64,000 bases of DNA from positions 4,960,001 to 5,024,000 of the forward strand of contig OZ218951.1 of NCBI GenBank assembly GCA_965112735.1, read 5' to 3'. Of the stretch, positions 3,957 to 63,300 are shown piece after piece. This DNA is from Phaeosaccion multiseriatum (Eukaryota > Protista > Ochrophyta, other classes). Both the position numbers and the translations under genes were made by a program. The stretch's first letter is position 1; each line of letters opens with the position of its first letter. Below the pieces are notes generated by a model. It made no database searches. It worked only from the letters and a program-made list of their open reading frames with translations, and had not been told where the DNA came from.

Positions 3957-4963
3957 TGAAAGGGGCACCTCTCATGGCATGCAGTGTGGATGTAAGGGCG
4001 GAGGGAGGGGAGACTGGTGATGGCCTGTGTTGATTGAGTTGAGGACGAGGGAGCAAAGGTCGAACTACCTCATCGGCCGCACTCCTCGCAGCGGGGGGCT
4101 TGAGAGGGCATTACAGGGCGGCTGCTGTATCACCAACTGCTGCTGCTGCTGCTGCTGCTGCTGCTGCTGCTGACCCTTCAAGCAGGACGATTCGGGGTTA
4201 GAGGGGCCTGCTATCCACCACACAGGCACAGTCTTGGGTAAATATGAAATGGAAATAATGTGATGTGCTCATTTTAATTTTAAAATTCATGGTTAAAAAA
4301 AAAAGGTACGAATGATTCACCGTTCCTTCCCTTCCCTCTGGTTCCCCCTCTCTCCTCCGGTGCCTCCCCTCCCCCCCCCCCCCCCCCTTTACCCCACCCC
4401 CCACTCTCACTCCTTTTGTTTGTTCGCTTACGTCTTGCCTGGCTTCTCTTCGAAACAAAGCGAAAAGAAACGTACTGTGTGTGGCTCTGAGAGTGGCTCT
4501 CTTCAAAATCGTTTCGAGTCTGTCCGTCGTGTGAGTCCATCCGTGTCGTATGCCTTGACAAGGTACGTTCAACACGACGCCAATCGATTTCCCATCACCC
4601 CCCGCGTGTCGACATGACCACGAACACACGCACGCGGTCGGACCGAACCTCTTCCCTCACCTCCCCTTCCCTCCCTTGCCCTCTCTTCCCCTCCTCCCTT
4701 CTCCCCTCTCCCCTCCCCTTCCCTAATGCCACTGGATGGCACTCCACGACCATTCCCATCCTCGGAGAGGGAAGGAGTAAACAAGCAAGCAAGCACTGTA
4801 GATGGCGAAGTGATTGTAGGCCCGTCAGTCAACCGAGAGGTGGAGCAACTTGTCTGCTTGACGCCCCTACCCCATGCCATGCCGGCAGGTCCCGTCCCGT
4901 CCCATCCCGTCCCGTCTCGTCCCTCTGAGTCAAGTCTCGCCTTCGTTCCTGTCCCTTTGTTGC

Positions 4964-60300: not shown

Positions 60301-63300
60301 GGACAAGAAACGTCAGAAACGTCAGAAACACACACCCACGTATACATTTTCCAGCAAGAGCACTCCCTCCCCTCCCCTCCCCTCCCCTCCCCTCCCCCCT
60401 ACACCCTCTCACCTTCTCCGCCCCGAGCGCCTCGTCCTCCTCTTGTGACACCCTCCGCCAGTCCTCGCCGTACTGCGCCTGCATGCTCGTGTAATAGCGT
60501 CGGAGCTTCATTCGGCCATTGGGGTCGCACAGTTCGAGATCGACGGCCCGCTCCCAGCTCACATGCAAATACGACTTGTTCTTCCACTTGATGAGGTACA
60601 TCTCCTCCTTCTTGCCCAGCCCTCCAATGAGCGAGTTTGTGGGCACCACGGGCGCTGCCACTGCTGCTGCCGCTTCCCTACCATCACCACCACCCGCCGC
60701 CGCCGTTGGAGGATCGGGAGCAGGGGCAGCAGTTGGTGATGCAGCCACCTCGAGCATCTGCCAACCCAGGACCTTCTCGATGATAAAGTTGTTGTCTTCC
60801 TCCTCCGCATGCCCATGTGCATTAGCGCCAAACATGCCCACGTCCCCCTCCTCCCCGTACTCCTCCTCACCCCCCTCGCCCTCCTCCCCCTCTTGCCCGT
60901 CCACTACCATCCCGCCCGCCGCGCCGTGCCCCCCCCGCCCTTTGTCGTCGCTGTTGTACTCCGTGTAGGTAGTGTTGTTATTGTTGGCAGAGGAGCGTTT
61001 CCGCCCTCCTACCCGCCGGGCAGAGGCCCTCTCCACACCACCGCCCTCTCCTCCTCCTCCTCCTCCTCCTCCTCCTCCTCCTCCTCCTCCTCCTCCTCCT
61101 CCTCCTCCTTCCTCCTCGTCTTGGTACTCCTCGTCGCCGTCATCTGTTGCCGCACGTGCATCTTCCCTCCCTCCCGATCGCTCCCTCCTAATCTTGCCCT
61201 TGCCCGCCTTTGACCTTGCCGCCTTGGGCTGTATCACCAACTGCTGTGGCTGCTGCATGGCCGCTCCAGCTCCACTGCCGTCTTGACCGCCATCATTAAT
61301 GTTGCCATTCCGCACCTTGGCAGTAGCAGGGGAGCCCTTGCTACTTTCCCCCTTGCCCTTCTTCCCTGCAGCCTTCGCCTTGCCTTTGTTGCTGCTGCTG
61401 CTGCTGCTGCCGCTGCTGCTCCCTCTGACTCCACCCAAAGGCGGCGCTGGGGCGGGAGGAGAGGAGGCAGACTTGCTGCTAGCAGCAGCACCAGCCGCAG
61501 CACTACTTTGTGAGGCTGAAGCCGCCCCCTTGGCCGCCTTACCACCGCTCGTAGGAGTGTCACCGCTTCCGCTCTTGCCCTTCCTTCCCTTGGTGGAGGG
61601 TGTTTTACTGTTGCGAGAATGGTGAGTTAGTTGTCGGGGGGCCACGGAGAGAAGAGAGGGAGAGGGAGGGGTGGGGTTATGTATTGGCTTACGGGAATAA
61701 ATATCTAACAAGTTACGTAAGCAGCGTGTGTGCGTGCGTGTGTCTCTTGAGCGAGAAGGAAAGAAAAAGAATACATAAAAAATCGAGATGGGGAGAGAGA
61801 AGGAATTAGAAGGAAAGACAGGGGATGGGATGAATCCATAGACTCCACAACACTCAGAAGTGGGTGGAGCAACAAGTAAGTTGCAGCGCGTGTTTTGACT
61901 GCTTCTGTATCACCAACTGCTGCTGCTGCTCCTGCAGGTACTACTCACGTTGTTCCCGTCCCCTTCTTGGCGGCCTGTCCCTGCTTGGCCTTCTTCTGCA
62001 GCTTTTGCCTCTGATTCTTTGCCTTTAGGCACAGGGAACACACGAATTTGAGCTTCTTGAGTGCAGACTGAAGCGAGATTGGAGGAGAGAGATGGCAGTG
62101 GAGGGGCGTCGGAAGGGAGGGGAGGGAGCGGGCCGACATGCGAGACAAAGCAGGGGGAAGCGGGTTTAATCCAGGAAGGGGGGGAACAGAACAAGAAATT
62201 GAAATGAAATAGTGGGCACTAAAGAGCGAGTTGCAGCAAGGATGGCTCTGCAACAGGGGAGGGGTGTTAGTCTTGCGTCTGACTGTCTATCTTCTGTGCG
62301 TCTGGTCTCTATCGCTCCTGCTTGAAGTATCTTCCTGCCTCCTTCCTCCTCGTGCCTCTTTCTCTCTCTCTCTCTGGCCCCTCCCCGCCCCTCCCCTCCC
62401 CTCCATCCCTCCCTGTCCGTCCGTTCGGCTTACCTCCTGCTTCTGCTCCTCCGTGAGCTCGAGGCCGCAGCACTCGGGATGGAATTTACCATTACAACCG
62501 CCCGTAGCGTCTGCGCACGCCACCAAAAGGCCTGAACCACCGCCGGATGGGAGGGTGGGCGGGGGTGGGGGTGGGTGTGAGGGGAAGGAGCAGAGTTTAG
62601 CTCAGCAAACAGCGAATGGCGGTATGTGGAAATGACAAACCACATTCCGGCGATCGGAGAGGATATGAAAGGTGCATTCCTGTGTGCGCATGGGGAGGAA
62701 GCTCGGGAGCGCTGCGAATGGCGGACACTGATGGCAGAGGTTGCATAGTTCAGACCTTCCAGCAGAGCACCAACAACACCACCAGCTCCTCCTCCTCCTC
62801 CTCTTCGAGTGGCTTCCTTCGAGGGGCGACACTCGCTTCTGACCAAGGCAAGCAAGACAACATGCATGATGCCTCCGCTGGCGTGTCCGCTAGCCCCTTT
62901 CCTTCTTCCCTTCCCCATTCTTCAAGTGTGCTGCTGCTACTGGTGATGAACAGCTTCCGAGTCCACACCAGCAGCCCTAACTCCCTCAATTTTCTTCCCC
63001 CCTCACTGACTCACCCGTTTTCTTCCCCTGACAAACGCAGACCTTCTCCTGCTGTTGCTGCTCCTTCGTCCTGCCCTGCTGCTGGCGCTTGCTGCTCCTC
63101 CTGCCGTCACTCTGGCCTGGCGTCTCGGCACTCGAAGCAGCAGAGGCCGCAGCAGGAGCTACTTTCTCACCACCAGCACTCCCGCTGCCGCTGCTGTCTC
63201 CGTCTGGCTGACCACTCTTTGCAGAAGCGGGCTTTCGGCCCCTCTTTTTACCGGCGCTCCTGCTGGTGCCGGCGCTGCCGCCGCTGCTGCCACTGTTGCA

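Follow-up and report, generated by a model that had tools for sequence, protein, structure and literature searches.

A dispersed 11-bp word with mirrored placement at intron ends in Phaeosaccion multiseriatum: a possible signature of an intron-colonising element

Introduction

A 64,000-nucleotide stretch of the genome of the ochrophyte Phaeosaccion multiseriatum (GenBank assembly GCA_965112735.1, contig OZ218951.1, forward-strand positions 4,960,001 to 5,024,000; hereafter the window, numbered from its first letter) contains many copies of an 11-bp DNA word, GTATCACCAAC. The copies are spread over exons, introns and intergenic DNA; a preliminary description of this DNA had placed them in exons, introns and UTRs. 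We find that the two orientations of the word occupy mirrored positions in the introns of three unrelated genes, that two splice acceptors are built on the word, and that one intron opens with an arm of a perfect 19-bp inverted repeat containing it. We propose that the word constitutes the conserved core of the terminal inverted repeats in an undescribed family of short, non-autonomous DNA elements resembling introners or miniature inverted-repeat transposable elements (MITEs), and we give this reading a probability of about 45%. Such a family would sit in introns and would sometimes, probably, have created them.

Results

An exact search recovers 23 copies of GTATCACCAAC in the window, 10 on the plus strand and 13 on the minus strand, which represent 17 independent sites when the copies of a tandem array are merged into one. 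All of them lie at the coordinates first reported. Markov models of order 0 to 4 fitted to the window predict 0.015 to 0.084 copies (the earlier estimate for uniform base composition was about 0.03), and 100 dinucleotide shuffles of the window yielded no copy at all. The excess over chance is roughly thousandfold. When up to one mismatch to the word is tolerated, 30 sites are found against an expected 0.63. The near-variants that had been listed are also real, with six carrying one mismatch (9987, 37805, 37817, 37940, 55776 and 60732) and four carrying two changes or an indel (23290, 57066, 59198 and 60127), and further variants occur at 57334, 37882 and 37596. The shared block is slightly longer than 11 bp, given that T stands directly 5' of the word at 15 of the 17 sites and TG directly 3' at 11 of them.

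Word placement was judged in three genes whose exons had been checked by homology. The first, on the minus strand, encodes a class C G-protein-coupled receptor (GPCR), four exon pieces of which match the Pfam family 7tm_3 collinearly (positions 4-39, 40-93, 95-149 and 158-190). These matches define introns A (38048 to 37791), B (37628 to 36994) and CD (36796 to 36487), and the low-complexity tail of the receptor corresponds to a long open frame at 34204-35814. An extra exon at about 36640-36715 was considered and rejected, as the 7tm_3 profile is collinear without it. The second gene, for a CHD-type remodeller, covers about 61.9 to 42.4 kb, again on the minus strand, with 17 exon blocks identified by tblastn with a 1,923-aa homologue. 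The third, an Hsp110 gene, also lies on the minus strand (about 5.6-12 kb, stop at 5623), and a junction after LVDYVQ at its intron 10005 to 9608 gives normal Hsp110 sequence.

The introns of these genes reveal a strict polarity of the word with respect to splice sites. Antisense copies, which read GTTGGTGATAC in the transcript, begin no more than 25 nt from the donor in all six cases, whether exact or variant, and a G-rich arm follows each of them. Their offsets from the donor are not constant. One exact copy begins at +5 of GPCR intron CD (36782-36792), and another at +9 of CHD intron 56806 to 56536 (56788-56798, plus strand), where it leads into the G-rich arm. Copies with one mismatch begin at +9 of the Hsp110 intron 10005 to 9608 (9987-9997, plus strand), at +13 of CHD intron 55798 to 55457 (55776-55786, plus strand) and at +13 of CHD intron 57356 to 57014 (57334-57344), and a decayed copy begins at +25 of GPCR intron B (37596-37604).

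Sense copies show the opposite placement, as every one that is intronic sits from about 40% of the intron length onward. Two of them, at 36996 and 37793, run straight into AG and then exon, such that the word itself builds the acceptor. At the end of GPCR intron B (36994-37008, minus strand), the sense word at 36996-37006 plus AG constitutes the 3' splice site. The 3' part of intron A (37791-37951, minus strand) holds six word-like units, comprising exact sense words at 37793 and 37850 and variants at 37805, 37817, 37882 and 37940, and the final unit plus AG forms the acceptor. Two sense copies in CHD introns, each on the minus strand and with two mismatches, lie about 55-60 nt upstream of their acceptors; one (57066-57076) belongs to intron 57356 to 57014 and is followed by poly-C, and the other occupies 59196-59206. 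Overall, about 10 of the 36 intron ends in the three genes bear a copy or variant.

The most complete arrangement of paired copies is found in GPCR intron CD, where a perfect 19-bp inverted repeat, GGTGTGTTGGTGATACAGG, has arms at 36779-36797 and 36582-36600 and spans 216 bp. The left arm (minus strand) opens the intron and is made up of the last exon base, the donor GTGT, the antisense word at 36782-36792 and AGG. The right arm (plus strand), in which the transcript reads the sense word at 36587-36597, lies about 200 nt into the intron, and a 100-nt C-rich stretch intervenes between it and the acceptor. These arms pair in a predicted RNA stem (z = -2.97; 0 of 200 shuffles fold as well). Decayed inverted word pairs also bracket most of introns 37628 to 36994 and 57356 to 57014.

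More generally, the G-rich 5' arms and C-rich 3' arms usually pair in the predicted folds of seven word-bearing introns, which have 11-49 end-to-end pairs compared with a shuffle mean of 7-10, although four of the seven are near or inside the shuffle range. CHD intron 56806 to 56536 has the 7-nt sequence AGGTGAG at each of its junctions, and among the splice sites that bear the word, AG/GTGT recurs at one donor and two acceptors; because these strings coincide with the splice consensus, they are weak evidence of target-site duplication. For a single intron, the CHD intron at 57356, the position could be compared with a relative. In the nearest one reached (locus L012, exon 83% identical), the exon continues without a break at this point. 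This distant relative (L012:400-470, 47% G+C) has an intron 15 nt downstream of the equivalent of 57356, and both introns start with GTTGGT, an offset that could reflect intron sliding or independent gain.

Two structural observations concern the same receptor gene. Intron B (37007-37619) forms a large imperfect fold-back in which a GT/G-rich half opposes a CA/C-rich half, with arms of about 100 nt that are 75-86% complementary and a fold z-score of -7.2. Furthermore, the exon at 36797-36993 is flanked by complementary word copies, sense before and antisense after, an arrangement that can favour back-splicing into circular RNA.

Copies in coding DNA make clear that the constraint acts on DNA and not on protein, because the word is read in three frame/strand combinations, two of them within one exon. 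This conclusion, already drawn in the preliminary description, is well illustrated by the GPCR tail exon, which contains AVGDT twice and VSPT seven times. The AVGDT readings come from solitary plus-strand copies antisense to the gene, at 34235-34245 (10 codons upstream of the stop) and 35213-35223, and the VSPT readings come from a 21-bp tandem array of seven exact copies in the last GPCR exon (34632-34860, minus strand) that encodes GDGVSPT repeats. This array is the only local amplification of the word, which elsewhere appears as a complex 11-19-mer at unlinked sites. An origin as a slippage-derived simple repeat was ruled out by the presence of this complex 11-19-mer at 17 unlinked sites.

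In the CHD gene, solitary exonic copies yield AVGDT at 42821-42831 (plus strand, last exon, with a flanking GCA/CTG repeat), VSPT at 45911-45921 (minus strand, linker exon) and QLVIQ at 61231-61241 (plus strand, probable N-terminal exon). A variant with one mismatch at 60732-60742 (minus strand) yields ASPT, 125 nt upstream of the first CHD chromodomain. Among the confirmed exonic copies, none uses the LYHQL frame, the CITN frame or the stop-containing frame. The peptide readings proposed earlier are thus confirmed in long open frames in the receptor and the remodeller, but the AVGDT reading assigned to Hsp110 is not supported; the copy concerned (5019-5029, plus strand) is non-coding and lies about 600 nt past the Hsp110 stop, in 3' flank or intergenic DNA.

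Other copies lie outside or at the margins of coding sequence. A copy at 4127-4172 (plus strand) comprises the word and 12 following CTG units, and stands in the 3' untranslated region (UTR) or intergenic DNA 170 nt past the stop of an ankyrin-repeat gene; this copy and that at 5019 are located between the converging ankyrin and Hsp110 genes. At 23269-23298 (plus strand), a copy and an adjacent deletion variant are found 300 nt past a long open frame resembling EGY3/peptidase M50. The copy at 27513-27523 (minus strand) marks the border of a CAG/CTG repeat and is probably non-coding, the sole long frame through it reading poly-Cys. Finally, a copy at the 5' edge of the CHD gene (61907-61917, plus strand) adjoins a CTG repeat in an exon or 5' UTR.

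The association with CTG/CAG repeats has its own fixed geometry. All 11 of the 11 adjoining copies have the same orientation, with the word followed by TGCTGC, and 6 of the 20 pure CTG/CAG tracts of at least 4 units have the word at their edge. The tract-distal side of the word usually meets unique sequence. We rejected the possibility that the word is the truncated 3' end of a retrotransposon with a CTG tail, as no copy passes a common sharp border.

GTATCACCAAC is the most frequent complex dispersed word of the window, though not the sole one, in DNA that has 59% G+C and very abundant simple repeats. A second word, with the core ATGGCAGTGGA and usually the form GGATGGCAGTGGATGG, occurs at 11 independent sites (10497, 24474, 37070, 39421-39435, 40784, 44871, 54256, 57743, 58318, 58640 and 62092) against an expectation of about 0.03-0.1. 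Its sites lie mostly within G-rich intron arms, and two are about 25 nt past CHD donors.

Several other repeats share the window with these words. A CHD intron houses a 5.2-kb satellite (47236-52417) with a 19-bp unit in about 272 copies at 93% matches, and units related to it (GGGTGTCAGGACAG) are scattered through other introns, for example at 36108-36271. A GGGTGTCAGGACAG-type unit also stands at the 5' end of the intron 37628 to 36994, with a decayed word copy fused to it. A 25-bp minisatellite occupies 17040-17784 (30 copies, 92% matches). Three ankyrin-repeat genes (2337-3956, 29364-30746 and 31556-33646) are 73-90% identical among themselves at the DNA level, and their last 60 coding and first 60 flanking bases are nearly invariant. 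The open frame at 20025-22967 has its best likeness in the protein atlas to EGY3/peptidase M50 proteins of diatoms, plants and green algae, which suggests from sequence an organism with a plastid; its product has no close relative in the protein database. The window contains no chromosome end.

In searches for relatives, a 21-mer scan of metagenome contigs gave no match, and 16-mer and viral scans gave single chance matches and one unrelated collagen-like repeat. Protein searches, some of which were swamped by low-complexity words, revealed no close relative in the collections searched, and the word is absent from two loci that encode distant ankyrin homologues. Within the window, the only duplicated DNA is that of the ankyrin genes, from which the word is absent and whose 3' flanks fail to align at the copy at 4127. 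Among open-access papers, matches to the 11-mer and to four 12-mers come exclusively from unrelated work, and those examined are assay or primer studies. The window has no tRNA genes and no Rfam family, and resemblances of the word to a retro-copied tRNA 3' end or a U6-like segment were dropped as lacking support.

Discussion

The mirrored positions of the word at intron ends, the acceptors built on it, the 19-bp inverted repeat, the decayed inverted pairs and the occurrence of AGGTGAG at both junctions of one intron together match what is expected of introner- or MITE-like intron elements. One arm of such an element would provide GTTGGTGATAC right after the donor in the transcript, and the opposite arm would provide GTATCACCAAC toward the acceptor, where the next two bases can supply the AG. 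The arms would extend into G-rich and C-rich simple sequence that changes rapidly through slippage, and therefore only the complex word would stay recognisable. Copies that stand alone in exons, UTRs or intergenic DNA would be relics, left as footprints of excision, by gap repair that was aborted or as remnants of one end. Within coding sequence, survivors should be limited to copies with an open and tolerable frame, each of which would add 4-5 residues to a disordered linker, and local slippage could later expand CTG/CAG repeats or tandem arrays from solitary copies. Transposition itself and the origin of the solitary copies are the parts of this proposal that we infer.

A number of observations weigh against this proposal. 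An all-against-all comparison of the seven word-bearing introns shows that they share only the word and simple sequence, with no common body. No target-site duplication flanks the 216-bp fold-back, and none is clear elsewhere; moreover, intron CD extends 100 nt beyond the right arm of the inverted repeat. Most introns bear the word at one end only, the donor offsets vary from +5 to +25, and neither a transposase nor an autonomous copy is present within the window. Nine of the 17 independent sites fall outside these introns and have no nearby partner with which to form an element. Copies that adjoin CTG repeats have their simple sequence on the side of the word opposite to the one it takes in introns; the proposal does not account for this reversal, which prevents a single outer end of the element from being defined. 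Exact copies far exceed decayed ones (17 independent exact sites against about 10-13 variants), a predominance that demands either very recent activity or some constraint. Finally, the existence of a second dispersed word may mean that the pattern is partly a general property of the simple sequence in this genome.

A more specific version of the proposal addresses the solitary words. These might be scars left by an intron coloniser that is still active, through mass excision or through copying that was aborted. A single family would then both create introns and, on departure, write a fixed insert of 4-5 residues (VSPT, AVGDT or QLVIQ) into disordered protein linkers across the proteome, and the word would remain exact through continual renewal. 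We regard this extension as rather unlikely. The P element illustrates one relevant process, as its cut-and-paste excision involves 17-nt staggered cuts. Solo ends and excision footprints of MITEs resemble the window copies in being short pieces of terminal repeat with a defined length, found at former insertion sites in either orientation. They should, however, appear in both orientations with respect to a CTG target, whereas only one is seen here. We know of no description of footprints of 11-15 bp at such density and in frame within exons.

Established systems provide partial precedents. Introners are intron-generating, non-autonomous DNA transposons known from Micromonas, Aureococcus, Symbiodinium, Chrysochromulina and others (PMC9860276, PMC12130899). 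They can have inverted-repeat ends and derive splice sites from target duplications, and some families add 12 in-frame bases to the mRNA (PMC9860276). The window is similar in having a repeated sequence at the intron ends of unrelated genes, inverted-repeat ends, and splice sites that could derive from the element or a target duplication. In contrast, introner families are similar along the whole intron, whereas the introns studied here share only an 11-19-bp end motif. The window also differs in having no evident target duplications, mostly one copy per intron and many solitary copies in exons and intergenic DNA. The introner elements of Amoebophrya (PMC7789003) are similar in that their 8-20-nt inverted repeats pair the 5' and 3' ends of one intron, short direct repeats span the exon/intron borders, the bodies are heterogeneous, and no transposase has been found. 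They differ in that no family-specific repeat motif was found in them and their splice sites are non-canonical (PMC7789003), as opposed to the one universal word and GT-AG introns of the window.

Two further comparisons concern the behaviour of the word in exons. Bacterial DNA uptake sequences (DUS) and uptake signal sequences (USS) and the cyanobacterial highly iterated palindrome HIP1 rely on prokaryotic machinery for DNA uptake or methylation. Like the word, they are short, exact, far above chance, present on both strands and in several coding frames, and driven at the DNA level, but they are unconnected with introns and with simple repeats. The repeat-rich segments of Eimeria consist of CAG and telomere-like heptamer repeats within coding sequence. 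Here too, repeats at the DNA level enter exons in several frames and create inserts rich in Ala, Gln and Ser in conserved proteins. The Eimeria segments are tandem simple repeats, whereas the window features a single complex word that stands beside repeats and is polarised at splice sites.

The alternative that fares best is that the word is a selected, cis-acting splicing or RNA-structure signal, whose forms at the two intron ends pair or bind a factor and thereby join the ends of long introns filled with simple sequence. Exonic copies would then have arisen incidentally, where splice sites shifted or intron sequence became exonised. The strict polarity of the word relative to splice sites, its use with AG in two acceptors, the pairing of 5' and 3' arms in most of the predicted folds of the seven introns, and the better preservation of exact copies than of their flanks all accord with such a signal. 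In teleost fish, complementary intron ends are described as assisting splicing through structure. The Amoebophrya introns with 8-20-nt inverted repeats at their ends offer another parallel (PMC7789003). We nevertheless consider this explanation unlikely. The word is found at no more than about a quarter of the intron ends, and in most introns there is a single copy. The stem of the sole perfect pair buries the donor and should hinder U1 binding. Many exact copies are not confined to introns, being placed mid-exon, in 3' flanks or in intergenic DNA in both orientations relative to transcription, and the polarity may simply track the change in intron composition from a G-rich 5' end to a C-rich 3' end.

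A second alternative dispenses with transposase. Here the word would be a 12-15-bp hitch-hiker that is copied among the genome's many tracts of CTG/CAG, GGT or G-rich sequence. The tracts would serve as homology for ectopic gene conversion or for template switching, and the copying might be biased toward keeping the insertion. This would account for the constant orientation relative to the CTG strand (11 of 11), the word-edged tracts (6 of the 20 noted above), the placement of the word at borders between tract and unique sequence, the like behaviour of the second word in G-rich tracts and the lack of a common element body. We find it doubtful even so. Conversion predicts donor flanks of variable extent, but the shared block is sharply bounded on both sides, and several copies adjoin no more than two or three repeat units on one flank and unique sequence on the opposite flank. 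The donor-proximal position of antisense copies and the 19-bp inverted repeat would also be left unexplained.

The lead idea of the preliminary description, that the word is the site of an abundant factor that binds duplex DNA for boundary, chromatin or recombination functions and is selected genome-wide, now appears improbable. Its appeal lies in the very strong excess on both strands, the predominance of exact copies and the presence of what we take to be Myb-like (CAACTG) and GATA-like cores within the word. However, the fixed orientation relative to CTG repeats and splice sites argues against a free-standing duplex site, since a symmetric site of that kind would need no such orientation, and fits instead with copying together with flanking sequence or with an element end. 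It would also be costly for selection to maintain an exact 11-15-mer within coding exons at intervals of a few kilobases. The spacings of 195 and 214 bp that had hinted at nucleosome phasing are explained by gene structure, given that 36587 and 36782 are the inverted-repeat arms of intron CD, 36996 is the acceptor copy of intron B, and a 197-nt exon lies between these introns. Among the functions first put forward, a link to splicing comes closest, and a free-standing protein-binding site is not supported.

The possibility that the word is an artefact of assembly or sequencing, for instance a residue of adapters or of polishing, has next to no probability, as copies lie in frame in long open frames and precisely at splice sites, contigs built independently from two different samples (Logan) contain 90-100% of the sampled 31-mers of two stretches with 1 and 14 copies, and no adapter known to us matches the word.

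We therefore return to the intron-colonising element as our preferred reading. One of the outcomes named beforehand as refuting the original reading was that all copies are fragments of one known transposon family. This applies only by half, as the evidence does point to a transposon-like family, but to one that is undescribed. In the three genes studied, about a quarter of intron ends bear one 11-19-bp signature, and this signature provides a direct handle on intron gain and loss and on the reshaping of disordered protein regions by transposons. It also has a practical use in annotation, as a predictor of splice sites and a flag for residues inserted into linkers. If the word is instead a splicing signal, it would represent an undescribed, lineage-specific signal of intron definition. 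If the solitary copies are excision scars, they would reveal a eukaryotic DNA-level drive that reshapes proteins across the proteome. If the word is indeed the end of an intron coloniser, this genome would offer an unusually clear case of ongoing intron turnover, in which the same process leaves in-frame inserts in conserved proteins such as a CHD remodeller and a class C GPCR.

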